A DNA stretch of 64,000 nucleotides from Squalus acanthias (Eukaryota): contig CM059434.1 in the NCBI GenBank assembly GCA_030390025.1, positions 45,446,001-45,510,000 on the forward strand, given 5' to 3'. Positions 14,166 through 64,000 of the stretch are shown here, piece by piece. Numbering within the stretch: the first letter of the stretch is position 1; every line of letters begins with the position of its first letter. The notes beneath the pieces are model-generated. The model saw nothing but the letters and a program-made list of their open reading frames with translations. It was not told where the DNA came from and did no database searches. A program made the translations under genes and the position numbers.

Positions 14166-14214
14166 ATGAACATTTTGACTTTTTGCAGTATTGTTTCATT
14201 TATTTCAACATCAG
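14166..14214 (+). CDS. Putative signal-peptide exon ([16 protein letters not shown])
   Basis: agaATG (A at -3), 16 mostly hydrophobic codons, TCAG|gtaaag phase-1 donor matching the IgV exon phase. Confidence 0.6.
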
Positions 14215-23200: not shown

Positions 23201-26200
23201 ACATTTTATGAAATAACAACAGAAAACGCTGGAAAAACTCAGCAGGCCAGGCAGCATCCGTGGAGAGAGAAAGAGAGTTAACGTTTCAGGTCGATGACCT
23301 TTCATCAGAACTGGGAAGAGCCGGAAATCAAATAGATTTAAGGCCAGGGTAAAGCTGGGAAAAGGGGGAGGGGATAAAGGAACAAAGGTGGAGATGAAGA
23401 GACATTAAGAGACATTAAGAGATATGCAAGGCTAGAGGTGGTAATGTGACAGATTAAGGCTGAATGAAGTGTGAAATCCACTGGCAGAATGAAGGACAGC
23501 TGCCAGCTTCTAGGAGGAAAAAAAAGGTGGGGGGGGACAAATAGAAGGGTGGATAAAATAAAATATAAATGTGATTGGAGCTGAGGTTATGATCTAAAAT
23601 TGTTGAACTCGATATTGAGTCCAGAGGGCTGTAGCGTGCCTAAACGAAAGATGAGGTGCTGTTCCTCGAGCTTACGCTGAGCTTCCGTGGAACAGTGTAA
23701 TAGGCCGAGGACGGTGAGATCAGAGTGGGAGTGAAGCGGTGAATTAAAGTGACAGGCCACCGGGAGCTCGGGGTCCCCCTTACGGACTGAACGGAGGTGT
23801 TCTGCAAAGCGGTCACCCAATCTACATTTTATGGTTTTGTAGTAGCTTATCAGTAAGATATTGCTAGCATATTGCTGGTGTATTATTAAACTATACAACC
23901 TCTACTTAAATTTACATTTGTTTTCTACACAGCTCGACCAAACATTAGCTTATCCGCACAATCCATTACAATTCCGAGTGGTGCAGAGGGCTCTGTGAGA
24001 TGTGATGTTACTGGATTTTATCCTTGGCCGCTAGACATCAGCTGGGTCAAGATATCAAGATGGAGAACAGAAAATGTTTCGTTAGATAGCTATACAAAAA
24101 AATTTGTCAGCAATAGTGATAAAACATTTAATATTTCCAGTCAACTGAGGATTCAACCAACAGAGAATGATGATGGTGTCAAGTACAGATGTGTGGTGAG
24201 GCACCCAACATTTCCTGATGGTTTCACAATAGAATCTGTACTCACTGTACAAGGTGAGTTCTATCATGAGAGGAACATAAATGTGAGGGGAGGATAGAAG
24301 AGAGGAGAGAAGGAGGGTTGAGTGAGCGGAGGGAAGGGGAGGAGAATGTGAAAGGTGGATATGTGACAGGGAAAGGGAGTGGGAAAGAAAAAGTGGGTGG
24401 TGTTGCATTAATCCTTATTCTTTTAATAACCGATTCAAAAAGCTAGAGAGAGTAATATGTCTGACAATTAACTTCATTTATTATAGTTTCAAAACATTCA
24501 TCTTACATACAGACTACATACAGAGTAGTACATGTAGTCCTATGTCTAGAAACTTGCGTGTAAAGAACTTCCTGACAATTGTGAGCGATTGTCTATCCCA
24601 GCCGTTCACGGTACCTCACCTTGAAGGTAGCTAAAGTTCCTAACATGAGTGAAGGCTTGATTCCCTCTTTATACCATGTTAAAAACAATCATACGTTGCC
24701 CAATTCTTGCTGAGTTTAACTTTGACCTTTAGGTCATCAAACAGATTGCTGAATATACAATCATATCCTGCACATGTTCTGTTACATTCTCATCTCAGCA
24801 GCCTTTGCTCCTTATATTCTCAGTGTCTTTGATCAAAAGATAAGATCCGCCAGTATACATAAGAACAAAAGAAATAAGAGCAGGAGTAGGCCATTCGGCC
24901 CATTGAGTCTGCTCCGCCATTCAATAAGATCATGGCTGATCTTCTACCTCAACTCCACTTTCCTGCACTATCCCCATATTCCTTGATTCCCTTAATATCC
25001 AAAAATCTATCAATCTCTGTCTTGAATATACTCAACGACTGAGCAACCACAGCCCTCTGGGGTAGAGAATTCCAAAGATTCACCGCCCTCTGAGTGAAGA
25101 AATTTCTCCTCATCTCAGTCCTAAATGGCCGACCCCTTATTCTGAGACTGTGACCCTCGTTCTAGACTCCCCAGCCAGGGGAAACATCCTCCCTGCATCT
25201 AACATGTCAAGCCCTGTAAGAATTTTGTTTGTTTCAAGGAGATCTCCTCCCATTCTTTAAACTCTAGAGAATATAGGCCTAGTCTACTCAATCTCTCCTC
25301 ATAGGACAATCCCCCCATCCCAGAAACCAGTCTGGTGAACCTTCGTTGCACTCCCTCTATGGCAAGTATATCCTTCCTTGGGTAAGGAGACCAAAACTGT
25401 ACATAATACTCCATGTGTGGTCTCACCAGGGCCCTATATAATTGCAGTAAGATGTCTTTACTCTTATACTCAAATCCTCTTGTAATAAAGGCCAACATAC
25501 CATTTGCTTTCCTAATTGCTTGCTGTACCTGCATGTTAACTTTCAGTGATTTTTGTACAAGGACATCCAGGTCCCTCCGAACACCAACATTTCCCAATCT
25601 CTCAGCATTTAAGAAATACTCTGCTTTTCTATTTTTCCTACCAAAGTGGATAACTTCACATTTCTCCACATCATATTCCATTTGCCATATTCTTGCCCTC
25701 TCACTTAGCTTGTCTATATCCCCTTGAAGCCTCTTTGCATCCTCCTCACAACATACATTCCCACCTAGCTTTATATCATTAGCAAACTTGGATATATTAC
25801 ATTTGGTCCCCTCATCCAAAGCATTACTATAGATTGTGAATAGCTGAGGCTCAAGCACAGATACTTGCGGTACCCCACTAGTTACAGCTTGCCAACCCGA
25901 AAATGACCCATTTATTCCTACTCTCTGTTTTCTGTCCGTCAACCAATCCTTAATCCATGCTCGTATATTACCCCAATCCCATGAGCCCCAATCTTTTCAG
26001 CTTCATCCTTAACCATTTCAACATCATTCATGTGTATGTGTTGTCTATTTTCCTTCCTATATGTAGCATGTTAACTACTGTTTCCTAGGTTATTATGGTA
26101 CAGTTAATCCTCAGGTTTGCTCCTAATAATCAATTCCATTAGTTTACACACAATTAAAGTAAGGCTGATGGGCCCATAGTTGCCTGTGTCTGTTTTGTCA

Positions 26201-29200
26201 CCCTTTTTGGTTATGGGCACCTTATTAGTCTGTTTCAATCTTCTGGTAGCTTCCCAGATTCCATGGACTTCCTCATAATGATTGTTAGTGCCTTGCAAAT
26301 CTCCTCCCTAGTCTTTCACAGCACTCTGGGGTAAATATCATTTATCTCTTTTGAGTACTTCTAACATTTATAAGACTTCCATCTCATTTATACCTAAGTA
26401 ATTGATTTTACTTGGAATATCTTTGTTTGGGAAGGGCATATTGCTCCTGTCTTCCCTTGTGAATACTTGGAGGAAGTAATCATTTACAGTATTTACTTTT
26501 TATTGCTCATATTCAGTTTTGAACCCTATCGTTTGTTTTTTAAGCTCTTACTGTTGTTCTGAGGAACTGAGTGTTAACATCAAATCTGCATGAACACTGT
26601 GTTCAATATCATGGATCATTATCAGTTCTCCTTACACTTTCAGCCAATTCATTGTTATAGATTTTCAAATAGCTATTTCTTTTTATACTCTGATAATTTA
26701 CAGAATCTGGGGCCCGTTCACATGTTGTTGCAGCTATAATCTGTGTTGTGGTGCTAATATGTATAGCACTTGGCTTTGGCATTTACATTTGGAGAAACCA
26801 TCGAAACGGTAAGCTACTTCTTAATCTTATAAATAAGTGATTGAATCTGTTAATAATTTCTCTTTTTTTAGTTCATTCTTGGGTTATGGGAGTCGCTAGC
26901 AAGGCCAGCACTTATTGCCCATTCCAAGCTGCCCTTGAGAAGGTAGTCGTGAGCCTACTTCTTGAACCCCTGCAGTTCATGTGGTGAAAGTACTCCCACA
27001 ATGCTGTTGGGTAGGGTGCTCCATAATTTTTACCCAACGATGATGAAGTAACGATGATATATTTCCAAGTCATGGTGGTTTGTGACTCGGGAGGGGAACG
27101 TGGAGGCGATGCGCCTGCTGCTCTTGGCCTTCTAGGTGGTGGAGAGCATGGGTTTAGGAGGTCCTGTCGAAGTAGCCTTGGTGAGTTACTGCACTGCATC
27201 CTGTAGATAGTACATAATGCAGTCACCGTACACTGGTGATGAAGGGAATGGATGTTTAAGGTGATGAATGGCTGCTGATCAAGTGGACAGCTTTGTCCTG
27301 GATTGTGTCTAGCTTCTTGAGTGTTGTTGCAGCTGCACCCATGCAGACAAGTGGAGAGTGTTCCATAACGTTCTTGACTTCTGCTTTGTAGGTGGTAGAG
27401 AGGCTTTGGGGAGTCAGGAGGTGAGTCACTCTCTGCAGAATACCCAGCCACTGACCTCTCCATAAATTGACTAATATATAGCTGTGACAAATTGGTATAT
27501 AGTATTGAAAGAAATGGGCATGATGGTTCGAATGGCTTCCTTCTGTGCTGTATGATTCTATGAAATCCAATAGGAAATTTAAGAGATTGTGAATAACTGA
27601 GACCCAAGCATTGTTCCTTGTGGTACCCCACTAGTTAGAGCCTGCCAACCTGAAAATGACACATTTATTCCTACTCTCTGTTTTCTGTCCATTAACCGAT
27701 CCTCAATTCATGCTGATATATTACCCCCAATCCCATGAGCACTAATTTAGTTTAATAACCTCTTGTGTGGCACCTTATGGAATGCCTTCTGAAAATCCAA
27801 ATACACCACATCCACTGGTTCCCCCTTATCTATTCTGCTAGTTACAACCTCAAAAAATTCTAACAGATTCGTCAAACATGATTTTCCTTTCATAAATCCT
27901 TGTTGACTCTGCACAATCCTATTATTATTTACTAAGTGCCCTGTTACCACGTCGTTAATAATAGATTCTAGCATTTTCCCTTCTACTGATGTCGGGCTAA
28001 CTGGTCTGTAGTTCTCCATTTTCTCTCTGCCTCTCTTCTTAAATAGTGGGGTTATATTTGCTACCTTCCAATCCGCGGGAACTGTTCTCGAATCAGTGGA
28101 ATTTTGGGAAATGACAACCATCATCACTATCTCTATAGCCACCTCTTTCAAAACCCTAAGATGTAGGCCATCACGTCCAGGGGATTTAACGGCTTTCAGT
28201 CCCATTAATTTCCCCAGTACTATCTTTTTACTAATACTAATTTCTTTCAGTTCCTCATTCTCGCTAGACCCTTGGTTCTCCACTATTTCTGGGAGTTTTT
28301 TTGCGTCTTCTTCCGTGAAGACAGGCACAAAGTATTTGTTTAATTTCTCTGCCCTTATTCTCCATTATAATTTCTTCTGTCTCAACTGTAAGGGACCCAC
28401 ATTTACTTTAGCTAATCTTTTCCTTTTTACATACCTATAGAAGCTTTTACAGTCTGTTTTTATGTCTCTCGCTAGTTTACTCTCATATTCTATTTTCCCT
28501 TTCTTTATCGATTTCTTGGTTCTCCTTTGCTGAATGCTAAAATCCTCCCAATCCTCAGGCTTACTGCTCCTTTTCGCAACATTATAAGCCTCTTCCTTTG
28601 ATCTAATACTATCTTTAACTTCTCTTGTTAGCCATAGTTGGACCACTTTTCCTGTGCCTTAAACAAATGTATATTGGTTGTAAATTATGTATTAATTCTT
28701 TAAATGCGAGCCATTGCTTGTCTACTGTCATACCTTTTAATGTAGTTCCCCAATCTACCTTAGCCAACTCGCCCCTCATACCTTCATAGTTTGCTTTGTT
28801 TAGATTTAAGACCCTAGTTTCGGATTTAACTAAATCACTTTCAAACTTAATATAGAATTCTATCATATTATGGTCATTCTTCCCTAAGGGCCCCTTTACT
28901 ACAAGGTTATTAATTAACCCTTTCTCATTGCACAATGTCTAAAATAGCCTGTTCCCTAGTTGGTTCCTCAACATACTGATCTAGAAAACTATCTTGTATA
29001 CATTCTATGAATTCGTCCTCCACACTATTACTGCAAATTTTGTTTGCCCAGTCTATATGTAGATTAACGTCCCCCATGATTACTGTATTACCCTTGTTAC
29101 ATGTGCCTCTAATTTCCTGATTTATACTCTGCCCTACATTACAACTATTGTTTGGGGGCCTATAAACAACTCCCACCAATTTTTTCTGCCCCTTGCTGTT

Positions 29201-50200: not shown

Positions 50201-53200
50201 CCAGAACCATAAGAAAGAAAGGTGCCAATGAAACTCTAAATCTTGGAGTCACCGCAAAACCCAGGAGTCAGACAAACACCCATGAGCAATGTCACAGGAT
50301 ATCTGCTTGTGTGTGTACACGTATGTATTAACTAAGTATGAATCATGAATGAATCTGCTGTGGATTCAGCATCGCATTCATCCCTGGATGGCAGTTTCAA
50401 TACAATCACAATGTTCCAGTAAGGGCTTGCAAGTCAGTCTTCGTGAAATTGTGGCATCTTCTCTGTGTTTGTCCCATTTCCTGGTCTGTCTGTGGCAGCT
50501 GTTCTTGAATGTGCCAGACATTCTTGAAAAATGCCACAAAGCATCCATGAGATATGCAGTCAAGTTAGCTGTCAGTTAAGCGAGTATGGAAAATACTTTT
50601 CCTTACTTACCTGCTGCTCCCCAGCCTGTTGATATTCTCAACCGATTTATTAACAAGGAGTCACAATTCATGATATTATGTGTGGAATGATTTTTCTCCC
50701 TGACAATCATTTTGACTAACATTGAATGGCTCATTATGGTAAATATTGTTGCAGCGCTATTAACCCTTTCATCACAAATCTCTATTGTGGTTTGAAGAGA
50801 CTACCCTAATTGATAACTCCTAATTGTTTCTGCTGCTATCATTGTTGCTTTAAAGAATAACACGTTGTATTCAGGTGGCATTCTGCAAATTTAGTACAAA
50901 TAAAACAGCATAAACATAACTGAAAAGTTGGAAATTAATTATTAATAATGGTTATGAGAGTTTTCACTTGAATGTTGAACGTTTGGTTCTGCTTCATTAC
51001 ACTTGGGCAGTGAAAGAGTTGAGATAATTATTACTTTGAAGTGGTGTCAAAAATCCCGACTACAAGGAGCTTAAATGGAAATCTAGAATGACATCCTTTT
51101 AAAATTGTCACATTCAGTATCCAACTGCTATGGATTCAGGTCAGTTTTTGCCTGCTGATATATTTTGACTGCCTTATTGTTTCAGGACAAACAAAACCAA
51201 AGGAAAGTGAAGATGATAGTAACAAAGCACTTCTTGAGAAGAAGTATCCTCAGTCTGAAAGAGGTAAATGCCTATGCCAAGTACATAATTTCCATTCTTA
51301 TCAATGCACTCTGAACACACTCAGTCATATATTCTGTAACAATGATAATTTCAGAATTAATTTCAATAGGAGAGGGACATTGCAAAATTTTAATTATCCA
51401 GATTCAAAAGGTTTCAAAAGTTGGTTCAGTCTCACAGAATTGATTCCAAGGCAGTGAAATGCAGATGTAATGGAGACCATTATAGAGTTATGCACAGCAA
51501 GGTCCCACAAACAGCAAATAAAAAGAATGCTAGTTTATTCTGTTTTTTTGATGGCATTGATTGAGGCAGAAACATTGTTCATAATAACCAAAGAGCACCC
51601 TATTCTTCTTGGAACATCCGCCTGAGCAGACAGATGGGTCCTTAGTTTAATGCAACATTTTAAAAATGGCACCTTCAACTATGCAGTACTCCCTCATTAT
51701 AGCACTGAAGTGTCACCTGGATTATGTGTTCAAGTCCGATGGTGGAGCTTGAATTCACAACCTTATGACTCAAAAACAAGAGTGCTACCAACTTAGCCAA
51801 CTGGATAACTGAAGGTCATGTAGGAGGGTCTCTGACAGGTTCTAGCTAAATACTCACAATGGTGAATGCACTCCATTCGCCATTAAATTATAGGCTGCTG
51901 AGTACTGAATTATCTAAGGTTTTCTGACCATATAACACGAAGAACTGTCTGTACATTCCGATGACCTCAGCTCAGTAACCATTAAAACAGTGAACTCAGG
52001 CCCATTAGTTCAATAAATGTAGCTATTAATTCAGTTCATAATTTGTGTCTGAACAAGAACACATAGGAGATAGTTAGAACATAAAATTTATATTACATTA
52101 ATGCTTTTTGTTTTGTAGTTCCTCCTACAATTAGTGATATTGAGATACCGCATGAAATCAAAGACGGCGAGGAAGCCCAGCTGAGTTGGGAAGTTACTGT
52201 GTTCAGTCCTGCGGTCGTGAATGTTGTTACATCCCTGAAGAGGAAAGGGGAGCAGGAAGCAAAGAAATTATATCACTGGAAACTGACAGCAAAAAAATTG
52301 TTAGGTCTATCCAGTCCCCTCACAAATGTACAAGTTTTATGCAAGAAAGACGATTCCTTCAGTGCTGAGGTGCCAGAATTACAACGTACAGCTGAAGGCA
52401 CTTTCAGAATACGCTGCGAAGTTACACTGTGCCCTGATATATCCAAGGATGATGGTGCTGAGTTAATCATTGAAGTTGATCATGACACGCCTGGGGAAGC
52501 TTGGACTAAAAGTGCAGTACTGAACATTACAGCAGGTAATTTCTGCATTTTGTACATCACACATACCCCTGCACAGCTGGAAATCATGGCACCAACTTAA
52601 AGATAGCTTATTTCCATTATTTCCATTCAGTATTATGATGAAATTTAACACATCCGGCATAGATCTGATGTGTGGAACCACAGCCATCATGAGTTGGTCA
52701 GAAGTGATTTGCTGTTTTCTATCAGCACCATAGGAATTACTGAACTAAAACTTCTTTTGCAGCTTTACATCAGTAAACTGTAGAATGCTATTCAGGTGCA
52801 GCAGTTATTACTGGTGTCATTGGTAGTTTAAGAAAGCAAGGATTACATGGAGGATTTAACATTTACGAAAAACACAACAGGGGAGAGATTCTTATCTTAA
52901 AGAATGATGAAACATTTATGATTCAATCTCTCTGACTCCCACTTGGTCACTATGATTCTTGCTCCTCAGTTATTTTCTCTCCTGTTTTCCATATTTCTCT
53001 CCATCATACAACATTCATGTCAGAGGGGAGGGGCAGATTTTCTGTTTTGTCGATCTAAGAAGGCTCCATTTTTCATGGCAACAATCTGGTAACACCAGCA
53101 TTGCTCAAGGAAAAAGCTGTCATAGACACAATGGGTCAAATGGCCTGCTTCTGTTGTTATTTTACATCTATACTTCTGCTTCTCCTGCCGTTTTCATTCT

Positions 53201-56200
53201 TTGATCAAAAGAATACAGTGTTGGTCTGTGACACTGCTACAAGTTTCAGGTCTGCCTTAGATATTCTCTTGGGTACAGTGATGCTGGTCACTCCCATAAG
53301 CAGTCTGAGCGTCTTCTGTTCAGGCCTGTGCCCGTACTGCCCAATATTTAATTATACGACCGCATAACCTGGGTATAACAATAAGGCCCAATTTTTACTT
53401 GAAGTGGATATTGAGTCTTTTCCATATGCCCTCAAGTGCACTTCACCAATCTTTTTGGAGAGGAACTGGAAACATTTGATTGAGATGAGGCCAGATACGA
53501 ATCGATCAACTGCGTTATTTTACAGATAGCAAGCTAGACGTGCAGAGTAACAGATGTAGCCAAATCTCACCTTGATTTAACTAACTACAGAACCTTCTTT
53601 GGGAGCAGAAAAATTAAAAAGAATATACCAAACTATCCCTATTAACAGGCTAGCATCACCCTTTCTGGTTAGCCTTCTGATTCTGATTGGCTCTGGGTTT
53701 GAGGTGAAAACATTTTCCCTCGCTTTCCGTTACTTGGAGATATTGAATTGATGTGGCATGTTGGCAGAGTATCCTATTAGCACCCCATGGCCTATTCTTA
53801 TAGCAACTGCCAGTGCCTAAATTAGACTTTACATTCAAGCAATTTGATGACGTGATCTGACTACTCAAAATTAGTTGTCAAAGGTAGATTTAATGTAGCA
53901 AGAGAGGTCTACTGGCAGTTAATTTTCTCAGAGGACCAGGTCTTCATTATTCTAAGATTCTCCAATGAGGAGGCAATCTGAAAATTAATGACATTTCCCC
54001 TTTGAAGAAGCGACATTTTGTTCAACTGAATACATGTGTTTTCTTTCAATATTGGCCAACAGTATTATCGCTGCTGTTTCTGCTCGTTTACACTATGGGG
54101 TTTACACTATTTACAGTGTTATTTACTTTGCATTAATGTAGAATCAAAGAAAACCTTTACAGGAGAAGAAAGCAATACTGAGGAAACAAAGCAAGCCACC
54201 GATGATAACTGCAGGCAAGGAGACGAGTTGGAGGAAAAAAATAATCGGGAAACTGAAGGTGGAATTAGCAGCAAAGGTATCTGATCTAATGAAAAGAATT
54301 TGTTATTTAATTAACGTGAAAGAGATGCAGGAAAGGAGTACATTAATGCAACTCTACATTGTAGACCTTAAAGGGGAAAAGATGTCGAGGGTAGGTACTT
54401 TTATTTCAAATTACAGTACTCATATTTATGTGGTAAAACAGAAAGGATTTTCATTAAATTATAGGCTGCTGAGTACTGAATTATCTAAGGTTTTCTGACC
54501 ATATAACACTAAGAACTGTCTGTACATTCCGATGACCTCAGCTCAGTAACCATTAAAACAGTGAACTCAGGCCCATTAGTTCAATAAATGTAGCTATTAA
54601 TTCAGTTCATAATTTGTGTCTGAACAAGAACACATAGGAGATAGTTAGAACATAAAATTTATATTACATTAATGCTTTTTGTTTTGTAGTTCCTCCTACA
54701 ATTAGTGATATTAAGATACCGCATGAAATCAAAGACGGCGAGGAAGCCCAGCTGAGTTGGGAAGTTACTGTGTTCAGTCCTGCGGTCGTGAATGTTGTTA
54801 CATCCCTGAAGAGGAAAGGGGAGCAGGAAGCAAAGAAATTATATCACTGGAAACTGCCAGCAGCAAGATTGTCAGGTCTAATGAGAGTATATATTCCCCT
54901 CACAAATGTACCAGTTTTATGCAAGAAAGATGATTCCTTCAGTGCTGAGGTGCCAGAATTACAACGTACAGCTGAAGGGACTTTCAGAATACGCTGCGAA
55001 GTTACACTGTGCCCTGATATATCCAAGGATGATGGTGCTGAGTTAATCATTGAAGTTAATCATGACACGCCTGGGGAAGTTTGGACTCAAAGTGCAGTAC
55101 TGAACATTACAGCAGGTAATTTCTGCATTTTGTACATCACACATACCCCTGTACACACGATGGTGGAAACAACAGCGGGAAATCATGGCACCAACTTAAA
55201 GATAGCATATTTCCATTATTTCCATTCAGTATTATGATGAAATTTAACACATCCGGCATAAATCTGATGTGTGGAACCACAGCCATCATGATTTGGTCAG
55301 AAGTGATTTGCTGTTTTCTATCAGCACCATAGGAATTACTGAACTAAAAGTCATTTTGCAGCTTTACATCAGTAAGCTGTAGGATGCTGTCCAGGTGCAG
55401 CAGTTATTACTGGTGTCATTGGTAGTTTAAGAAATCAAGGATAACATGTAGGATTTAACATTTACGAAAAACACAACAGTGGAGATATTTTTATCTTAAA
55501 GAATGATTAAACATTTATGATTCAATCTCTTTGACCCTCATTTGGTCACGATGATTCTTGCTCCTCAGTTATTTTCTCTCCTGTTTTCCTTATTTCCCTC
55601 CATCATACAATATCCATGTCAGAGGGGAGGGCAGATTTTCTGCTCCTTTGCCTGCTGTAGTGTTGTTTTACTTAGGATTACACGGGATATATGGCACAGA
55701 AACAGGCCATCGACCCAGCCAGTCCATGCTGGTTTTTATGCTCCACTTGAGCCTCCTCCCGTCTTTCCTCATCTAATTCTATCAGCATAACCCTCTATTC
55801 GCTGCTCCCTCCTATGCTTATCTAGCCTTCCCTTAAATGCATCTATACTATTCGCTTCAACCAGTCCCTGTGGTAGCGAGTTCCGCACTCTCACCACTCT
55901 CTGGGTAAAGAAGTTTCTTCTGAAGACCCTATTTGATTTATTGGTGACTATCTTATAATGATGGCCTCTAGTTTTGCTCTTCCCCACAAGTGGAAACATT
56001 CTCTCTGTATCCACTCTATCAAAACCTTTCATAATTTTAATGACCTCTATTAGGTCACCCCTCAGCTTTCTCTTTTCAAGAGAAAAGAGACCCAGCCTGT
56101 CCATCCTTTCCTGATAGGTATAACCTCGCATCCTTGGTATCATCCTTGTAAATCTTTTTTGCACACTCTCCAGTGCCTCTATATTCTTTTGATAATATGG

Positions 56201-59200: not shown

Positions 59201-62200
59201 ATTGCAAGAAGTACAAGTAAATCGCTGTTTCACCTGGAAGGGGTGTTTGGGGCCCTGGAGAGTGGGAAGGGGGGATGTATAAGGGCAGGTGTTGCATCTC
59301 CTGCGCTTGCACGGGAAGGTGCCGGGTGAAGGGGAAGGGGTGCTGGGGGTGATAGAGGAGTGGACTAGGGTGTCTCGGAGGGAGCGGTCCCTATGGAATG
59401 CTGAAAGGGGAGGTGAGGGGAAGATACGTTTGGTGGTGGGATCACGTTGGAGGTGGCGGAAATGGCGGAGGATGATCCGTTGAATGTGGAGGCTGGTGGG
59501 GTGAAAGGTGAGGACAAGGGGAACTCTATCGTGGTTCCGGGAGGGAGTGATGGCTTTGTTTCCTTCCAGTGTTTTTCTGTTACTCAGAGGCATTGAAAAG
59601 ATGTGGAATTTTGGCAGAGTATTCTATTAGCACCCCCTGGCCTATTCTTACTGCAACTGCCAGTGCCTAAATTATACTTTACATTCAAGCAATTTTTTAT
59701 GATGTGATCTGAATCATGTTGGAACATAAATGGGACGTATTAAATAATTTAATACTCTGCTTTCATAAGGAAAACATAAAACAGGGGGAAATACCACTCA
59801 AGTAACCAAGCTGTGGAATTCTGCCAGTACTACTCCAAACTAGTTGTCAAAGGCAGATTTAATTCAGCAAGAGAGGTCTACTGGCAGTTAACATTTTCAG
59901 AGGGCCAAGTCTTCATTATTCTAAGATTCTCCAATGAGGAGGCAAGCTGAAAATTAATGACATTTCCCCTTTGAAGAAGCGACATTTTGTTCAACTGAAT
60001 ACTTGTGTTTTCTTTCAATATTGACCAACAGTATTATCGCTGCTCTTTCTGCTCGTTTACACTATGGGGTTTACCCTACTTACAGTGTTATTTACTTTGC
60101 ATTAATGTAGAATCAAAGAAAACCTTTACAGGAGAAGAAAGCAATACTGAGGAAACAAAGCAAGACACCGATGATAACTGCAGGCAAGGAGACGAGTTGC
60201 AGGAAAAAAATAATCGGGAAACTGAAGGTGGAATTAGTAGCAAAGGTATCTGATCTAATGAAAAGAATTTGTTATTTAATTAACGTGAAAAAGATGCAGG
60301 AAAGGAATACATTAATGCAACTCTACATTGTAGACTTTAAAGGGGAAAAGATGTCGAGGGTAGGTACTTTTATTTCAAATTACTCATATTTATGTGGAAC
60401 GAAACAATAGTTTCATCACAAATTTCATTGAGTACTATATTTTTAAAAACTAACAACTTTATTTTTGAAATGGGGACTGTCAAGTAGAATTTCCCATCCT
60501 GGTACGGTGCTACATTAACGTTATATATGGCCACAGCCCATGCATTCTACAGTGGTTGCTTTGCAAACAGTGAAGGCCAAGACCTCAAAATGTCCCACTA
60601 GTTGCTCAAAATCCGTCAGATCCCAGGGGAACTTGCTACAAGCCACAAAATCTGCATCCTCCATCTTTAGCATGATTACCTGAGGTTGGGCAGTTCCGAA
60701 GTAGCTCTTAGGCCTGTTTGAAGTAATGCACACCAAGACATCTACACCGTCTTCATTTGCTTCCACACTACTCCAAAATGCTTTTCGTAATTCATGTCAC
60801 TGGAGTGGCCTTGCAGGGAGGGAGACTCCATTTGGGGTGTTTGTGTTGGCAAAAAATTGGTGGTTTTATAAATGTCAAAGGAATTTATGGTAAGACTGTT
60901 ATTTTCTTCTATAAAAAGAGATAACACTTTGAACAAAACAGTACCTCCCCCTTAAACATTTCTTGAACAAAATTCTGGAAATTTTAGTTGATTCATTTTA
61001 CAAATGCAGATGACAGATGGAGTCAAATAACCTGTTCAAAATTCAACTGTTCTCCGTTACCTGGTATCAATTGTTCTGAAGTGAATTAGATGGTAGTCAA
61101 TGAATAATACCATCCATATCTGTGATATTTCTGTTGCCTTTCTACTGGTTTTGCACTATTTTCAATGTTCCTTCCTTTGCATAAATGCAGAATCAAAACC
61201 TAAGGGTATGGGAGAAGCAAAAGGAGACAATGAAGCAGAAAATACCCTTCAAGCTCAGACTGAGGAAGAAGGTAGGTCTCCAGTAGTAAACAAGGCTGCA
61301 GAAAACAATAAAAAATTGAATGTAGAACGGATGGTGAAAGTATAAAATGGAGTGATGTGATAAAACAGAAAGGATTTTCATTGGACTTGGAAGTGATGAA
61401 GGAATGGAGCACAGTGATGAAAGTCATTATTGTATGATAACAAAATGCTGAAAAGTTGAGAATAAAATACACACTGAAGATCAATCACTAGGTTAATTCT
61501 ACAAAAAAAATGATAAATGCAATTGAATATTATTAGTACAAAAGCAAAATACTGCGGATACTGGAAATCTGAAATAAAAACAAAAAATGCTGGGAATGCT
61601 TAGCAGGTCAGGCAGCATCTGTGGAGAGAGAAACAGAGGTAACGTTTCAGGTCAATGACCTTTCATCCGAACTGGATAAAGTTCGAGATGTAACAGGTTT
61701 TAAGCAAGTACTGAGGCAGGGAAAGTGGAGAGGGGAGGAAAGAACAAAAGGGAAGGTCTGTGATAGGGTGGAAGGCAGGAGAGATTACATGACAAAAGGG
61801 ATGATGGTGCAAGGCAAAAGTAGATGGTAATGGGGCAAGTAAAGTAAAGTGCAGTTATGAAAGTTACAGCATGTAATTTACACAAACCCCTGCACACATG
61901 ATGGTGGAAATGTCCAGCTGGAAATCACGGCACCAGCATAAAGATATCTTGAAATATTATTTCCCTTCAGCATTACTGAGTAACCCGCTGGGCCACGACA
62001 GAGTGCAGTTAAGGCTCAACCACACTGGTGTGGGAGTGGAATCAGATATAGGCTAGACCGCATAAAGATTGCAGGTTTCATTCCCTAAAGGATATTAGTT
62101 AACCAGTTGGGTTTTTAGAACAAACTGACAGATTCATGGTCACTTTTATCTCCACATTTCTCAACCAGCCATGGTGGGACTTGAACTCACGTTCTCCGGA

Positions 62201-63998
62201 TTATTAGTCCACTAACAGTACCACTATGGTGCCAGACCCATATTCTATTATTGGTGCTGCCCTCTTAACCCTTACATCACAAATGTCTATGCCGGTTTGA
62301 GGAATTTACCCTAATTGCTATCTCTTAACTTTTCTGTTGCTGCTGTTATCATTTTTGATATTCAGGTGACATTCTGCAAATTCAGTACAAATAACACAGA
62401 GTAAACATAGCTGAAAAGCTGGAAAGTAATTATTAATAATGATTATGACAGTTTTCACTTGAAGATGAACAATAACCCGACATTTGGTTCTGCTTCATTA
62501 CACTTGGGCAGTGAAAGATTTGAGACAATTGTTTCATTAAAGAGGTCGCAAAAATCTCTACTACAAGGAGCCTAAACTTGGATTTAGAATGATGTACTTT
62601 TAAAATTGTCACATTCAGGATCCAAGTGCTATGAACTCAGGTTAGTTTGTGTGCTGGCTAATAGATTTTGACTGCATTGTCGTTTAAGGACAAACAAAAC
62701 CAAAGGAAAGTGAAGCAGGTATTGACAGAGCATTTCCTGAGAAGAAGATTCCTCAATCTGAAAGAGGTAAATACTGATGCCAACTACATAATTTCCAATC
62801 TTTTCAGTACAATCTGAACACACACAGTCATATATTTTGTAACAATGATAATTTCAAAGTTTCAAAAGTTGGTTCAGTATCATGGAAGATGTTCCAGAAC
62901 AGTCAATGAGATGCAGATGTAAAGGAGACCATTCTAGAGTTATGTACATCAAGGTCCCACAAATAGCAAACAAAAAGAATGCCAGTTTATTCTGTTTTTT
63001 TGATGGCATTGATTGAGGCAGAAACATTGTTCACAATAACCAAAGAGCACCCTGTTCTTCTTGGAACATCCACCTGAGCAGACAGATGGGTCCTTAGTTT
63101 AATGCAACATTTTAAAAATGGCACCTTCAACTATGCAGTACTCCCTCATTATAGCACTGAAGTGTCACCTGGATTATGTGTTCATGTCCGATGGTGGAGC
63201 TTGAATTCACAACCTTATGACTCAAAAACAAGAGTGCTACCAACTTAGACAACTGGATAACTAAAGGTCATGTAGGAGGGTCTCTGTGACAGGTTCTAGC
63301 TAAATACTCACAATGGTGAATGCTCTCCATTCGCCATTAACTTATTGGCTGCTGAGTACTGAATTATCTAAGGTTTTCTGACCATATAACACTAAGAACT
63401 GTCTGTACATTCCAATGACCTCAGCTCAGTAACCATTAAAACAGTGAACTCAGGCCCATGAGTTCAATAAATGTAGCTATTAATTCAGTTCATAATTTGT
63501 GTCTGAACAAGAACACATAGGAGATAGTTAGAACATAACATTTATATTACATTAATGCTTTTTGTTCTGTAGTTCCTCCTACAATTAGTGATATTAAGAT
63601 ACCGCATGAAATCAAAGACGGCGAGGAAGCCCAGCTGAGTTGGGAAGTTACTATGTTCAGTCCTGCGGTCGTGAATGTTGTTACATCCCTGAAGAGGAAA
63701 GGGGAGCAGGAAGCAAAGAAATTATATCACTGGAAACTGACAGGAAAAAAATTGTTAGGTGTAATGAGTGTATACAGTCCCCTCACAAATGTACAAGTTT
63801 TATGCAAGGAAGATGATTCCTTCAGTGCTGAGGTGCCAGAATTACAACGTACAGCTGAAGGCACTTTCAGAATACGCTGCGAAGTTACACTGTACCCTGA
63901 TATATCCAAGGATGATGGTGCTGAGTTAATCATTGAAGTTGATCATGACACGCCTGGGGAAGTTTGGACTAAAAGTGCAGTACTGAACATTACAGCAG
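14166..63998 (+). CDS. NCR3LG1: B7-H6/NCR3LG1-like type I membrane receptor with a long cytoplasmic tail of tandem Ig-like domains (multi-exon, 3' incomplete)
   Basis: Hand-assembled exons, all phase 1 with GT-AG and no stops: 14166-14214, 21855-22190, 23933-24253, 26704-26808, 33726-33818, 39631-39747, 40454-40534, 48536-48613, 51186-51263, 52119-52535, 54142-54276, 54690-55115, 60111-60245, 61191-61271, 62689-62766, 63573-63998. V-C1-TM core is firm; joining of the tail exons is inferred. Confidence 0.7.
16734..16770 (+). ncRNA. Minimal type I hammerhead ribozyme motif
   Basis: AGTT-CTGATGA-A-AGGTC(ATC)GACCT-GAAAC-GTT-AACT: core, stem II, palindromic stem III, 4-bp stem I. Confidence 0.75.
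16738..16866 (+). mobile_element. Short Penelope-terminal-repeat insertion inside CR1
   Basis: Flanked by duplicated CCACTAGTT (16729-37, 16867-75); matches the PLE ends at 23210 and 58500. Confidence 0.85.
19680..20217 (+). mobile_element. L2 LINE 3' fragment
   Basis: [23 protein letters not shown]; tail aaaggtgctatataaatgcaag(ttg)n. Confidence 0.8.
20268..21212. repeat. ~130-bp inverted repeat pair (20268-20396 / 21084-21212)
   Basis: Arms are reverse complements; they also yield homologous ORF text on opposite strands ([17 protein letters not shown]). Confidence 0.9.
21855..22190 (+). CDS. NCR3LG1: IgV exon of B7-H6-like gene
   Basis: tttttaaag|AT..TCAG|gtaagg, 336 nt; [44 protein letters not shown] resembles B7-H6 V-domain motifs (RPGA, GDASL.LP, D.G.Y.C). 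Confidence 0.92.
22723..22893. repeat. 19-bp minisatellite x9 (cctcctctcactgggtgta)
   Basis: Directly visible. Confidence 0.95.
23210..23828 (-). mobile_element. Penelope-like element 3' fragment (GIY-YIG C-terminus + terminal repeat)
   Basis: [35 protein letters not shown]. Confidence 0.9.
23276..23312 (-). ncRNA. Minimal type I hammerhead ribozyme motif in PLE terminal repeat
   Basis: Reverse complement reads agtt CTGATGA a aggtcatcgacct GAAAC gtt aact. Confidence 0.75.
23933..24253 (+). CDS. NCR3LG1: IgC1 exon of B7-H6-like gene
   Basis: ctacacag|CT..CAAG|gtgagt, 321 nt; [30 protein letters not shown] are C1-set signatures. Confidence 0.92.
24856..25997 (-). mobile_element. CR1 LINE 3' part
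   Basis: ORF 25199-25942 encodes RT C-terminal half; CR1 3' UTR. Confidence 0.95.
26100..26560 (-). mobile_element. Old degraded CR1 fragment
   Basis: [20 protein letters not shown] motif. Confidence 0.6.
26704..26808 (+). CDS. NCR3LG1: Transmembrane exon ([35 protein letters not shown])
   Basis: tttacag|AA..AACG|gtaagc, 105 nt; ~22 hydrophobic residues followed by basic stop-transfer residues. Confidence 0.88.
26870..27460 (-). mobile_element. 3' fragment of a second non-LTR retrotransposon family (duplicated at ~40760-41355)
   Basis: [31 protein letters not shown]-terminal-like text; 3' tail shared with the SINE at 32705. Confidence 0.7.
29385..30233. mobile_element. Harbinger-type MITE in CR1
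   Basis: Perfect TIR GGGGGGCGATTTT / AAAATCGCCCCCC; 3-bp TSD CAC. Confidence 0.88.
30292..30920. mobile_element. Solo LTR inserted in CR1 ORF2
   Basis: TGTAAGA...TCTTACA ends; 4-bp TSD AATC/AATT; removing it restores CR1 [14 protein letters not shown]. Confidence 0.75.
31953..32582 (-). mobile_element. Harbinger remnant with Myb/SANT-like ORF fragment
   Basis: [22 protein letters not shown]; end aaaatcgacccc. Confidence 0.7.
32705..33125 (+). mobile_element. tRNA-derived SINE with LINE-derived tail
   Basis: A box tggcatagtag, B box gagttcaaact; 3' ~100 nt homologous to the LINE tail at 26870-26965. Confidence 0.75.
33305..33720 (+). mobile_element. Deu-domain SINE (SacSINE1/AmnSINE1-like)
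   Basis: Recognised from memory: gtctttcggatgagatgttaaactgaggcccc..aaaagatcccatggcactatttcgaagaagagcagggga..; L2-type tail. Confidence 0.8.
33726..33818 (+). CDS. Cytoplasmic linker exon 1 ([31 protein letters not shown])
   Basis: ttctttccag| ... GCAG|gtaagc, 93 nt, phase 1-1, open. Confidence 0.7.
34185..35108 (+). mobile_element. Degraded CR1 3' part
   Basis: RT motif [16 protein letters not shown], 3' UTR. Confidence 0.88.
35700..37635 (-). mobile_element. Harbinger transposon remnant with intron-containing Myb/SANT-like accessory gene
   Basis: [36 protein letters not shown] plus downstream Met-rich coiled-coil ORF; no transposase seen. Confidence 0.75.
39631..39747 (+). CDS. Cytoplasmic linker exon 2 ([39 protein letters not shown])
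   Basis: pyrimidine tract + gcag| ... GCAG|gtaata, 117 nt; in-frame tandem acceptor 12 nt downstream. Confidence 0.7.
40454..40534 (+). CDS. Cytoplasmic linker exon, type C ([27 protein letters not shown]); alternative donor at 40588 gives 135 nt
   Basis: catttag| ... GAAG|gtgagt, 81 nt; same length and ends as 61191-61271; the 135-nt form matches the length of 54142-54276. Confidence 0.65.
40627..40701 (+). pseudogene. Duplicated 5'-truncated TM exon ([25 protein letters not shown]), possible cryptic exon
   Basis: Near-identical to 26734-26808; keeps the gtaagc donor; catcag at the duplication junction lacks a pyrimidine tract. Confidence 0.6.
41478..44940 (-). mobile_element. Duplicated CR1 with ORF1 N-terminus (Cys-rich + esterase)
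   Basis: ORF 43906-44934 [27 protein letters not shown]. Confidence 0.92.
42812..42937 (-). mobile_element. Short PLE terminal-repeat insertion, present only in duplicate copy 2
   Basis: Absent at the paralogous site ~28915; hammerhead truncated at stem II. Confidence 0.85.
46974..47712. mobile_element. Harbinger-type MITE
   Basis: TSD AAT; empty paralogous site at ~50410. Confidence 0.85.
48536..48613 (+). CDS. Linker exon type A copy 1 ([26 protein letters not shown])
   Basis: tttaag|..AGAG|gtaatt, 78 nt; three homologous open copies in the window. Confidence 0.65.
48765..49640. mobile_element. Harbinger-type MITE (right end also at 46024-46185)
   Basis: ggccacgatttt / aaaatcacggcc; no TSD. 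Confidence 0.75.
51186..51263 (+). CDS. Linker exon type A copy 2 ([26 protein letters not shown])
   Basis: tttcag|..AGAG|gtaaat, 78 nt. Confidence 0.7.
51475..51805 (-). mobile_element. Degraded Deu-SINE (duplicate at ~62930-63260)
   Basis: Reverse-complement similarity to 33305-33720. Confidence 0.6.
52119..52535 (+). CDS. Disulfide-less C1-like Ig domain exon, copy 1 (139 aa)
   Basis: ttttgtag|TTCCTCCT..GCAG|gtaatt; [41 protein letters not shown] aligns to the C1 pattern with both Cys replaced. Confidence 0.8.
54142..54276 (+). CDS. Linker exon type B copy 1 ([24 protein letters not shown])
   Basis: aatgtag|..AAAG|gtatct, 135 nt. Confidence 0.65.
54690..55115 (+). CDS. Disulfide-less C1-like Ig domain exon, copy 2 (142 aa)
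   Basis: Same splice sites as copy 1; open; 426 nt. Confidence 0.8.
55643..56458 (-). mobile_element. CR1 3' fragment inserted in Ig repeat unit 2 only
   Basis: YCIQFW..TRGH..FFTQRVV; empty site at ~53043. Confidence 0.9.
57172..57912. mobile_element. Harbinger-type MITE with internal 29-bp minisatellite, inserted in a PLE terminal repeat
   Basis: Perfect TIR GGGCTGGATTTT/AAAATCCAGCCC, TSD ATT; (ctcccagatatgtctcccttgcaccacca)~5 at 57443-57591. Confidence 0.9.
58500..59555 (-). mobile_element. Penelope-like element 3' part (GIY-YIG endonuclease + terminal repeat)
   Basis: ORF 58904-59593: [35 protein letters not shown]. Confidence 0.93.
60111..60245 (+). CDS. Linker exon type B copy 2
   Basis: Near-identical to 54142-54276, same splice sites. 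Confidence 0.65.
61191..61271 (+). CDS. Linker exon type C copy ([27 protein letters not shown])
   Basis: ttcctttgcataaatgcag|..GAAG|gtaggt, 81 nt. Confidence 0.65.
61538..61840 (-). mobile_element. PLE terminal repeat fragment
   Basis: aaaagcaaaatactgcggatactggaaatc..; decayed hammerhead at 61637-61673. Confidence 0.8.
62689..62766 (+). CDS. Linker exon type A copy 3 ([26 protein letters not shown])
   Basis: tttaag|..AGAG|gtaaat, 78 nt. Confidence 0.7.
63573..63998 (+). CDS. Disulfide-less C1-like Ig domain exon, copy 3 (142 aa)
   Basis: ttctgtag|..GCAG|gt at the window end; open; contains SVYSPL and TLYPDI. Confidence 0.8.
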
Positions 63999-64000
63999 GT

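Follow-up and report, generated by a model that had tools for sequence, protein, structure and literature searches.

A B7-H6-like gene of Squalus acanthias with a predicted array of immunoglobulin-fold domains behind its transmembrane segment

B7-H6 and NKp30 serve as a model pair for "induced-self" recognition, and the C1-set domain is the hallmark of the extracellular molecules of adaptive immunity. A locus of Squalus acanthias raises the question of whether a ligand of this type can carry an array of immunoglobulin (Ig)-fold domains behind its transmembrane (TM) segment and, if so, on which side of the membrane the array resides. The window, i.e., the whole stretch of 64,000 nucleotides that was analysed (contig CM059434.1, positions 45,446,001 to 45,510,000), contains no N.

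Gene core and its transcripts

One gene was found on the + strand of the window, with the following leader, IgV, IgC1 and TM exons:

14166..14214, + strand: leader (signal peptide) exon, with ATG, 16 hydrophobic aa and GT donor; matched by the N-terminus of the relative P0002
21855..22190, + strand: IgV exon, Pfam V-set match at E = 3e-9
23933..24253, + strand: IgC1 exon, Pfam C1-set match at E = 3.8e-12
26704..26808, + strand: TM exon, 105 nt, 35 codons, phase 1-1, then WRNHRN; matched by tblastn to the TM of P0002

The TM exon encodes one hydrophobic segment with basic residues after it, and the 3' end of the gene lies beyond the window. The best PDB matches of the IgV exon, CD276 (9e-13) and B7-H6 (3e-11), were nearly tied, while the best match of the IgC1 exon was B7-H6 (1.1e-12), followed by UrIg2. 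The ectodomain of the relative P0002 also matched B7-H6 best (E = 2e-24 vs. 8e-16 for CD276). These comparisons support the assignment of the ectodomain of the window gene to the B7 family as B7-H6-like, and the normal leader-V-C1-TM core reported by the first-pass annotation holds, its exons being located and its domains matched. The locus is probably a paralogue within a family of shark B7-H6 (NCR3LG1)-like genes, which would encode type I membrane proteins, a degree of confidence that applies to our best explanation as a whole.

RNA contigs contained the V-C1 joint in two of four runs (X3 and X2) and the C1-TM joint in three of them (X1, X3 and X2), with positions 26705-26806 covered, and the intron bins of 22446-23141 had zero depth in all four. 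Contig 16 of X3 ran 78 nt past the TM exon, and these nucleotides did not match the intron, of which 144 nt were compared. The RNA contigs also extended 88-163 nt upstream of the V exon, outside the compared genomic stretch. The transcript is spliced from V through C1 and TM and onward past the TM exon. The window gene and B7-H6/NCR3LG1, the NKp30 ligand, have in common the signal peptide, IgV, IgC1 and, as predicted, a single TM, but the window gene adds a tail of ~700 aa or more, with Ig-fold modules and charged linkers. The tail of human B7-H6 is short and is not known to contain an Ig domain.

Exons 3' of the TM exon and the fold of the repeat

We located 11 candidate exons 3' of the TM exon, 2,108 nt in all and encoding ~702 aa, with the frame open at the end of the window. 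An AG acceptor, a GT donor and phase 1-1 were found for 11/11, and all 10 complete exons are divisible by 3. The first-pass annotation had described at least 12 in-frame phase-1 exons of ~715 aa; the phase-1 tail that is open at the window end stands, while count and length are corrected here. Its three repeats of 139-142 aa agree with the long exons (139, 142 and at least 142 aa). The candidate exons, two relics and a partial TM-exon copy are as follows:

39631..39747, + strand: charged linker exon, the weakest candidate; AG/GT, 117 nt, open frame, without homolog match by tblastn
40454..40588, + strand: charged linker exon; AG/GT, 135 nt, tblastn match to P0007 residues 235-272 and 338-383
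40624..40701, + strand: partial TM-exon copy (its last 78 nt), 99% identical to 26731-26808, where a duplicated LINE on the minus strand has its edge
46187..46207, + strand: relic, 3' end of an Ig-repeat exon with donor; alignment to the intact unit is limited to the final ~20 nt of the exon plus the intron downstream
48536..48613, + strand: linker exon, GQTK type; AG/GT, 78 nt, tblastn match to P0007 residues 144-169
~49642-49662: second Ig-repeat exon relic, from alignment to the intact unit
51186..51263, + strand: linker exon, GQTK type; AG/GT, 78 nt, tblastn match to P0007
52119..52535, + strand: Ig-fold repeat 1 (139 aa); AG/GT, 417 nt, 71% identity to P0007 residues 376-517, AlphaFold2 pLDDT 90.8
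54142..54276, + strand: charged linker exon, ESKK type; AG/GT, 135 nt, 80% identity to P0007 residues 570-615
54690..55115, + strand: Ig-fold repeat 2 (142 aa); AG/GT, 426 nt, 72% identity to P0007
60111..60245, + strand: charged linker exon, ESKK type; AG/GT, 135 nt, 83% identity to P0007 residues 570-615
61191..61271, + strand: charged linker exon, SKPKG type; AG/GT, 81 nt, tblastn match to P0007 residues 544-569 and 613-641
62689..62766, + strand: linker exon, GQTK type; AG/GT, 78 nt, tblastn match to P0007
63573..64000, + strand: Ig-fold repeat 3 (at least 142 aa), continuing to the window end; AG acceptor, frame open through the last base, 69% identity to P0007

The exon order in the window is that of Heptranchias XP_067849687 (P0007), as determined by tblastn. 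The three long repeat exons share 95-99% DNA identity, introns included (repeat families D1 and D5; D4, D12 and D17 for the relics). The linkers consist of 24% D/E and 18% K/R. The partial TM-exon copy, apparently unused, was probably carried along with the LINE. That S. acanthias expresses the repeat exons and joins them to the TM exon is a candidate reading, indicated by the homologues and by the 78 nt of one RNA contig.

AlphaFold2 modelled the repeat with a pTM of 0.85 at the pLDDT listed for repeat 1. Foldseek returned at least 399 PDB matches to this model at E ≤ 0.001, with an Ig-type fold in all 50 listed, and comparison by VIA yielded 358 chains with Z ≥ 8, the top Z being 11.7 over 115 residues. 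Because of an insertion of ~45 aa, the number of strands is V-like. The Ig fold that the first-pass annotation had proposed is thus recovered, and on the strength of the model the repeat can confidently be taken as an Ig beta-sandwich.

No Pfam C1-set match above threshold was obtained with any of the three repeats, and the sole Pfam match was ICAM D2 in two of them (E = 0.11 and 0.16). The profile of the repeat (A2) matched the constant domains of Ig alpha, mu and kappa, SIRP and MHC II beta-2 at E = 3e-5 to 5e-3, and the repeats were also recruited by an HMM started from a Callorhinchus C1 domain. Descent of the repeat from C1-set domains is shown by these profile comparisons. The cysteine columns were read from an alignment of 311 Ig domains built with an iterated HMM. 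In this alignment of relatives, the columns of the canonical B- and F-strand Cys and C-strand Trp hold W, T and I instead ("WTI" in the P0001, P0005 and P0007 repeats), and W and I occupy the two canonical Cys columns in the elasmobranch repeats. The window repeats contain LSWEV and LIIEVDH, and the earlier reading of W for the B-strand Cys and I for the F-strand Cys is confirmed by these columns.

Relatives and the side of the membrane

The signal-V-C1-TM-Ig array plan was found in chimaera, sharks, rays, bichir, sturgeon, coelacanth, lungfish, amphibians, turtles, crocodilians and snakes. Most of these relatives are named "uncharacterized," and members from alligator, gharial, turtle, python and axolotl bear the automatic NCBI name NCR3LG1. 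In the older branch, which extends from chimaera to reptiles, 6-8 C1-set domains follow the TM; the single intracytoplasmic Ig domain in ectotherms mentioned by the first-pass annotation does not survive this count. Over nine species, the post-TM domains match the ectodomain in conservation (30-41% vs. 35-39% identity), a sign of constraint. We could not find a description of this architecture in the literature searched, whose coverage was limited, in keeping with its earlier labelling as probably undescribed.

Among the systems closest to the window gene are proteins of an unnamed family with post-TM C1-set arrays (Callorhinchus LOC103174895, Latimeria LOC102345720 and Xenopus clusters), which have the same ectodomain and TM. 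The window repeat is 24-34% identical to the first post-TM domain of that family (E down to ~1e-14), and the F-strand Cys of this domain is absent in the 33 aligned copies, apart from a single-residue offset in two rows. The unnamed family has 6-8 differing C1-set domains, three of them with canonical Cys, starting ~5-10 aa past the TM, whereas in the branch of the window gene only the first domain type is present, amplified and separated by long charged linkers. Tandem cytosolic Ig-fold modules in which disulfides are not obligatory are also found in titin and filamin (titin Ig match, Z 10.6 by VIA), but those domains are I-set or filamin-type and not attached to membranes, in contrast to the C1-set-derived window repeat tethered to an immune-type ectodomain. 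In an IGSF1-like topology, Ig domains flank an internal hydrophobic linker and are all lumenal, the chain being returned to the lumen by a second hydrophobic segment or a C-terminal TM. The relatives of the window gene have one internal TM and none at the C-terminus. The non-rearranging UrIg and UrIg2 of sharks are described, in the part of the source consulted, as a V domain with many tandemly duplicated C1 domains and acidic stretches (PMC12227049). In UrIg2 as described there, the TM follows all C1 domains and the array is extracellular; in the window gene, the TM follows the first C1.

From one cleavable signal peptide, one TM and the basic residues that follow it (positive-inside), we infer that the array would be cytoplasmic. 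Neither a second TM nor a C-terminal TM was found in the relatives examined, and the end of the window gene lies outside the window. With the tail in the cytosol, the canonical disulfide would be dispensable, which fits its replacement by W and I. The Cys pair is absent in 117/191 post-TM domains vs. 7/61 ectodomain domains (kept in 74/191 vs. 54/61). The number of Cys per repeat varies from 0 to 6 and is odd in 20/33. N-glycosylation sequons are in excess in the elasmobranch ectodomains (30 observed vs. 13.4 expected) but not in the tails (22 vs. 22.6); this test is weak in the older branch, where the ectodomains themselves show no clear enrichment (33 vs. 27.5 expected).

These observations have to be weighed against a different use of the TM exon, which may be a cassette, with the repeats mainly in a TM-less secreted isoform (signal-V-C1-Ig array) whose array is extracellular and with a TM form that is minor or ends early. 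Its phase of 1-1 means that skipping preserves the reading frame, and predicted isoforms of Heterodontus (P0052) and Hemitrygon (P0072) skip it exactly, removing 31 and 38 aa, respectively; the whole chain of such isoforms would be secreted. Polypterus P0126 is a TM-less V-C1-(C1)n relative. In the older branch, moreover, post-TM domains 2, 3 and the last keep both Cys and Trp in nearly all species, and these conserved Cys pairs are easier to explain by an oxidising compartment. C1-set domains are not otherwise known from inside the cell. We nevertheless judge a mainly secreted array less likely, given the C1-TM joint in three of four RNA runs, the contig spliced past the TM and, in the window repeats, the absence of canonical Cys, the variable, often odd Cys number and the lack of sequon excess. 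The TM is also kept ahead of the domain in 37 of 49 HMMER matches and in 32 of 35 further relatives, in which 460-1557 aa follow it, with a conserved "..KK.PPK" junction to the first domain.

That the repeat exons form a transcription unit of their own, or are unused pseudo-exons, leaving a leader-V-C1-TM gene with a short tail, is quite improbable. A gap of 13 kb, full of LINE copies, does separate the TM exon from the next exon, two exon relics lie at 46.2 and 49.7 kb, and TM-less models make up 5 of the top 14 HMMER matches. Against this, each of the 11 exons has splice sites, an open frame and a common phase, the repeats show 69-72% protein identity to Heptranchias without stops, and splicing in the RNA contig continues past the TM exon. 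Full models connect the repeats to the TM, in the same order, in database proteins of at least seven cartilaginous-fish species, which upholds the linkage of repeat exons and core proposed earlier. The five TM-less models whose starts were read, among 12 of the 49 matches that are TM-less, all begin inside a domain and look like fragments. An assembly or annotation artefact, i.e., collapsed or expanded tandem duplicates or neighbouring genes fused in database models, is scarcely credible: repeats that are nearly identical and a LINE duplicated at 99% identity make assembly difficult and the relatives are mostly automatic models, but many species show the same architecture in assemblies made independently, the post-TM domains to the C-terminus of the family are encoded by a Logan contig of 3,507 nt (P0106), and spliced RNA contigs match the window.

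Proposed role of the tail

The explanation we consider probable is a B7-H6-like paralogue with a cytosolic tail of Ig modules. The protein would consist of a signal peptide, IgV, IgC1 and one TM helix, followed by a long tail in which highly charged, presumably disordered linkers alternate with 140-aa Ig-fold modules. These modules would derive from the first post-TM C1-like domain of the older family, a single domain type that would have been amplified in tandem in elasmobranchs, here to three intact copies and two relics.

The best functional analogy may be that of the butyrophilins. BTN3A1 and BTN2A1, which are B7-related, have IgV-IgC, one TM and a cytosolic beta-sandwich that senses intracellular ligands. 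Their intracellular domain is, however, B30.2/PRY-SPRY, and a Pfam scan of the window exons and of 17 relatives found no PRY or SPRY match. By this analogy, the most likely working mode would be inside-out control of an NK-receptor ligand, as with butyrophilin B30.2: binding of cytosolic partners to the Ig array would regulate how the ectodomain is displayed, clustered or turned over.

More tentatively, as a joint proposal, B7-H6-type NK ligands from chimaeras to reptiles may have carried cytosolic C1-set Ig domains over a span of more than 400 million years, in what would be the first intracellular use of this class. The domains would serve as a sensing or scaffolding arm that controls ligand display like butyrophilin B30.2; they would have been lost in mammals and rebuilt in sharks as a fast-duplicating, cysteine-free array.

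If the array is cytosolic, the C1-set class has an unstudied intracellular role, and a stress ligand of cold-blooded vertebrates bears its own butyrophilin-like intracellular sensing arm. If instead the TM exon is a switch, one gene would give rise both to a membrane-bound ligand and to a long multi-Ig protein that is secreted; this would also be new for the B7 family. Either reading would account for dozens of publicly available models of ~1,000 aa that are now labelled "uncharacterized" or "NCR3LG1."

Gene structure and spliced transcripts

The window, which holds no N bases over its 64 kb, contains one gene on the + strand, which begins at 14166 and is still open where the window ends. In this B7-H6 (NCR3LG1)-like gene, leader, IgV, IgC1 and transmembrane (TM) exons precede an array of Ig-repeat and linker exons, an architecture that is very probably real.

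Exons of the gene named in the text
14166-14214, + strand: leader exon with a GT donor, encoding a 16-residue sequence
21855-22190, + strand: IgV exon (Pfam V-set, E 3e-9)
23933-24253, + strand: IgC1 exon (Pfam C1-set, E 3.8e-12)
26704-26808, + strand: TM exon, 105 nt, phase 1-1, encoding a 20-residue hydrophobic stretch and then WRNHRN
52119-52535, + strand: long (repeat) exon
54690-55115, + strand: long (repeat) exon
63573 to window end, + strand: long (repeat) exon

The TM exon is followed by 11 candidate exons with AG and GT throughout. The ten complete ones (117, 135, 78, 78, 417, 135, 426, 135, 81 and 78 nt in order) are each divisible by three in length, and the last (428 nt) has an open frame at base 64000. 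Together they amount to 2,108 nt or ~702 aa, slightly fewer than the first-pass annotation had counted (at least 12 exons and ~715 aa), while its three repeats of 139-142 aa were recovered as the three long exons. The DNA of these exons is mutually 95-99% identical, as are the flanking introns, and the copies are therefore recent or homogenised. The eight short exons encode 271 aa, composed of 24% D/E, 18% K/R and 10% hydrophobic residues.

The sole stretch that differs among the near-identical repeats is the loop after HWKL (52290-52320, 54860-54930 and 63745-63810), whose variable sequences comprise 23 and 13 residues. A YxxL tyrosine motif has been gained in repeats 2 and 3 (RVYIPL and SVYSPL) and is found neither in repeat 1 nor in the aligned orthologues. 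Two exon relics (~46187-46207 and ~49642-49662) retain the last ~20 nt of an Ig-repeat exon, the donor and the downstream intron, with unrelated, repeat-like sequence in place of the upstream part.

Ten runs were presumed to be RNA, none being recorded as such, and four of them (X1, X2, X3 and X7) were aligned to 21750-26950, a stretch that ends before the post-TM exons. Zero depth was found across the intron bins 22446-23141 in all four, which indicates that they hold spliced RNA. At the V to C1 joint, contigs jump from 22187 to 23930 (GT..AG) in runs X3 and X2. At the C1 to TM joint, they jump from 24254 to 26705 in runs X1, X3 and X2, one base off the canonical sites, an offset that a single-base difference at the first base of the exon would explain. 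Contig 9 of run X2 (595 nt) spans V, C1 and TM, and run X7 yielded a V-exon contig alone. Contig 16 of run X3 (470 nt) covers C1 and TM and continues for 78 bases that do not match 144 nt of the downstream intron; the TM exon is thus included and spliced onward. A homologous-protein search with the C1 exon, confined to proteins whose length is 0.55-1.75 times that of the query, returned no protein at all, and thus no transcript-derived fragment of this species.

Both RNA contigs covering the TM exon cease to align at 26806, two bases short of the donor. Just past this break lies base 26807 (C against A), the single position at which the copy at 40.7 kb departs from the TM exon, and the break could reflect allelic variation, a paralogous gene or a transcript of the copy. 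That copy comprises the last 78 nt (3' end) of the TM exon, duplicated along with a minus-strand LINE with reverse-transcriptase and endonuclease ORFs (26731-31544 and 40624-44353, 98-99% identity), and it begins 35 nt past the donor of the 40.4-kb exon; the arrangement looks like a 3' transduction or a segmental duplication. The fragment (40624-40701) would provide, behind a CAG, an in-frame hydrophobic cassette of 75 nt. It was rejected as a second TM exon, being only 38 nt past the donor of the previous exon and with no sign of use, and is treated as a side effect of the LINE duplication. The intronic repeats at 23142-23837 and 24708-26099 reach contig depths of 1e3-3e5 in each of the four runs and are transposable-element families of high expression or great abundance.

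Relatives and the Ig fold of the repeat

Pfam assigned the three repeats to no usable family: two matched ICAM D2 at E 0.11 and 0.16, and the third had no match. Their homology to other proteins came from the HMMER library search only, in which, among 1.84 billion representatives, 49 proteins reached E<=0.001, of which 24 reached <=1e-10 and 10 reached <=1e-30; in view of these 49 homologues, simple chance is rejected. The best matches have the order signal-V-C1-TM followed by one to seven copies of the repeat domain with charged linkers. The distant relatives have a repeat-type domain 5-10 residues past the TM and then five to seven Pfam C1-set domains.

Relatives of the gene
Best match: Heterodontus XP_067902348, 7 repeats
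Best match: Scyliorhinus torazame
Best match: Callorhinchus LOC121850342
Best match: Stegostoma
Best match: Heptranchias, 71-72% identity over two complete repeats and 69% over the third, same exon order from C1 on
Best match: Rhinoraja
Best match: Mobula
Distant, C1-set tail: Callorhinchus LOC103174895
Distant, C1-set tail: Latimeria LOC102345720
Distant, C1-set tail: Erpetoichthys
Distant, C1-set tail: Protopterus
Distant, C1-set tail: Alligator

The Heptranchias model has no signal peptide or V domain and therefore looks N-terminally truncated. Searching again, this time with the Latimeria tail as query, yielded 41 proteins at E<=1e-20, including those of sturgeon, caecilians, axolotl, newt, turtles, gharial and snakes and many Xenopus paralogues; several carry the NCBI name NCR3LG1 and the remainder are uncharacterized. 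A hydropathy scan placed a TM inside the chain, followed by hundreds of residues, in 37 of the 49 first matches and 32 of 35 new ones, and the TM-to-tail junction "..KK.PPK" is conserved among relatives. No mammal, bird or teleost occurred among the named clusters, which were 30 of the 49 from the first search and the 41 from the second. Human B7-H6 was the best match of the ectodomain of the relative P0002 (E 2e-24; CD276, 8e-16) and B7-H6 that of the window's C1 exon, while B7-H6 and CD276 were nearly tied for the V exon. One relative, V9K7L7 (P0057), is presumably cDNA-derived.

The C-termini of the elasmobranch repeat-type proteins P0001, P0005 and P0007 have a common NPSQ motif (ENPSQ or DNPSQ). 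A further group of uncharacterized proteins carries 6-16 Ig domains behind an internal TM: P0031 (Dendropsophus, 2158 aa), P0035 (Mixophyes), P0036 (Bombina), P0025 (Erpetoichthys) and P0038 (Natator). Cys-Trp-Cys domains are interspersed with Leu/Val-Trp-Val domains in its frog and turtle members, and P0025 keeps Cys-Trp-Cys in 10 of 11 post-TM domains.

The first-pass annotation had proposed that the repeat would model as an Ig fold, and the predicted structure agrees. AlphaFold2, given an alignment of 33 repeat-type domain copies (A2), produced an all-beta pattern with pLDDT 90.8 and pTM 0.85. Foldseek matches in the PDB numbered at least 399 (E<=0.001); the 50 listed were without exception Ig-type folds, among them nanobodies, beta-2-microglobulin and MHC. 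VIA-align against 48,161 chains gave 358 with Z>=8, the best being MPZ and TCR V domains (top Z 11.7, 115 residues, rmsd 2.8). The modelling thus shows a predicted Ig fold, with a V-like strand count that is due to ~45 aa inserted after the C strand and before the D/E region. The A2 profile also matches the constant domains of Ig alpha, mu and kappa, SIRP and MHC II beta-2 (E 3e-5 to 5e-3) through the blocks "LsCxVtGFrP..I.v.W" and "DdgAel.C.V.H..L..P". An HMM seeded with a Callorhinchus C1 domain picks up the repeats, and in the resulting alignment the repeats of relatives have W, T and I in the columns of the C1-set Cys, Trp and Cys. These profile comparisons show the repeat to be, as judged by sequence, C1-derived.

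Side of the membrane

The array is probably cytosolic in the main product, toward which point the one signal peptide, the one TM and the basic residues behind it. Cysteine loss is a further sign. Of 61 ectodomain domains, 54 keep the canonical Cys pair, the seven exceptions being V domains apparently misaligned in the F column, whereas of 191 post-TM domains only 74 keep it (neither cysteine remains in 54, the first alone in 47 and the second alone in 16). Given that this loss is position-specific and common to chimaera through lungfish, it is old and stable. Repeat cysteines number 0-6 across species, and in 20 of the 33 copies the count is odd. The post-TM domains are not decaying; their mean pairwise identity across nine species (30-41%) is on a par with that of the ectodomain (35-39%). 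In elasmobranchs, N-glycosylation sequons are enriched in ectodomains (30 vs 13.4 expected) and not in tails (22 vs 22.6).

A mainly secreted use of the gene, with the TM skipped, is less likely. Some observations do speak against a cytosolic array. Among them is TM skipping in models of relatives: isoform X3 of Heterodontus (P0052) lacks exactly the 31-aa TM exon, isoform X6 of Hemitrygon (P0072) lacks 38 aa including the TM, and the TM exon in the window is likewise frame-neutral. Polypterus P0126 is a TM-less V-C1-(C1)n relative. Also against it, in the branch with C1-set tails, from chimaera to reptiles, Cys-Trp-Cys is kept almost everywhere in three post-TM domains (the second, the third and the last), and the sequon test has little power there (ectodomain, 33 vs 27.5). 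The Logan-derived P0106 starts inside the first post-TM domain and is therefore uninformative on TM inclusion.

Comparison with known systems

To our knowledge, the tail of human B7-H6 is without Ig domains. The main texts of the full-text literature yielded no account of B7-H6-like proteins with Ig domains behind the TM, an earlier mention being possible. In an excerpt of PMC12227049, the TM of UrIg2 is located after all its C1 domains; in an excerpt of PMC10751288, NKp30 occurs in the text and B7H6 solely in a reference title. Membership of the butyrophilins was rejected, as Pfam found no B30.2 domain in the window exons and 17 relatives. The function that we would infer for a cytosolic array is drawn by analogy, and the closest working analogy for the Ig array of the shark gene comes from the butyrophilins, in which a beta-sandwich in the cytosol, the B30.2 domain, exerts control over a B7-like ectodomain from within the cell.
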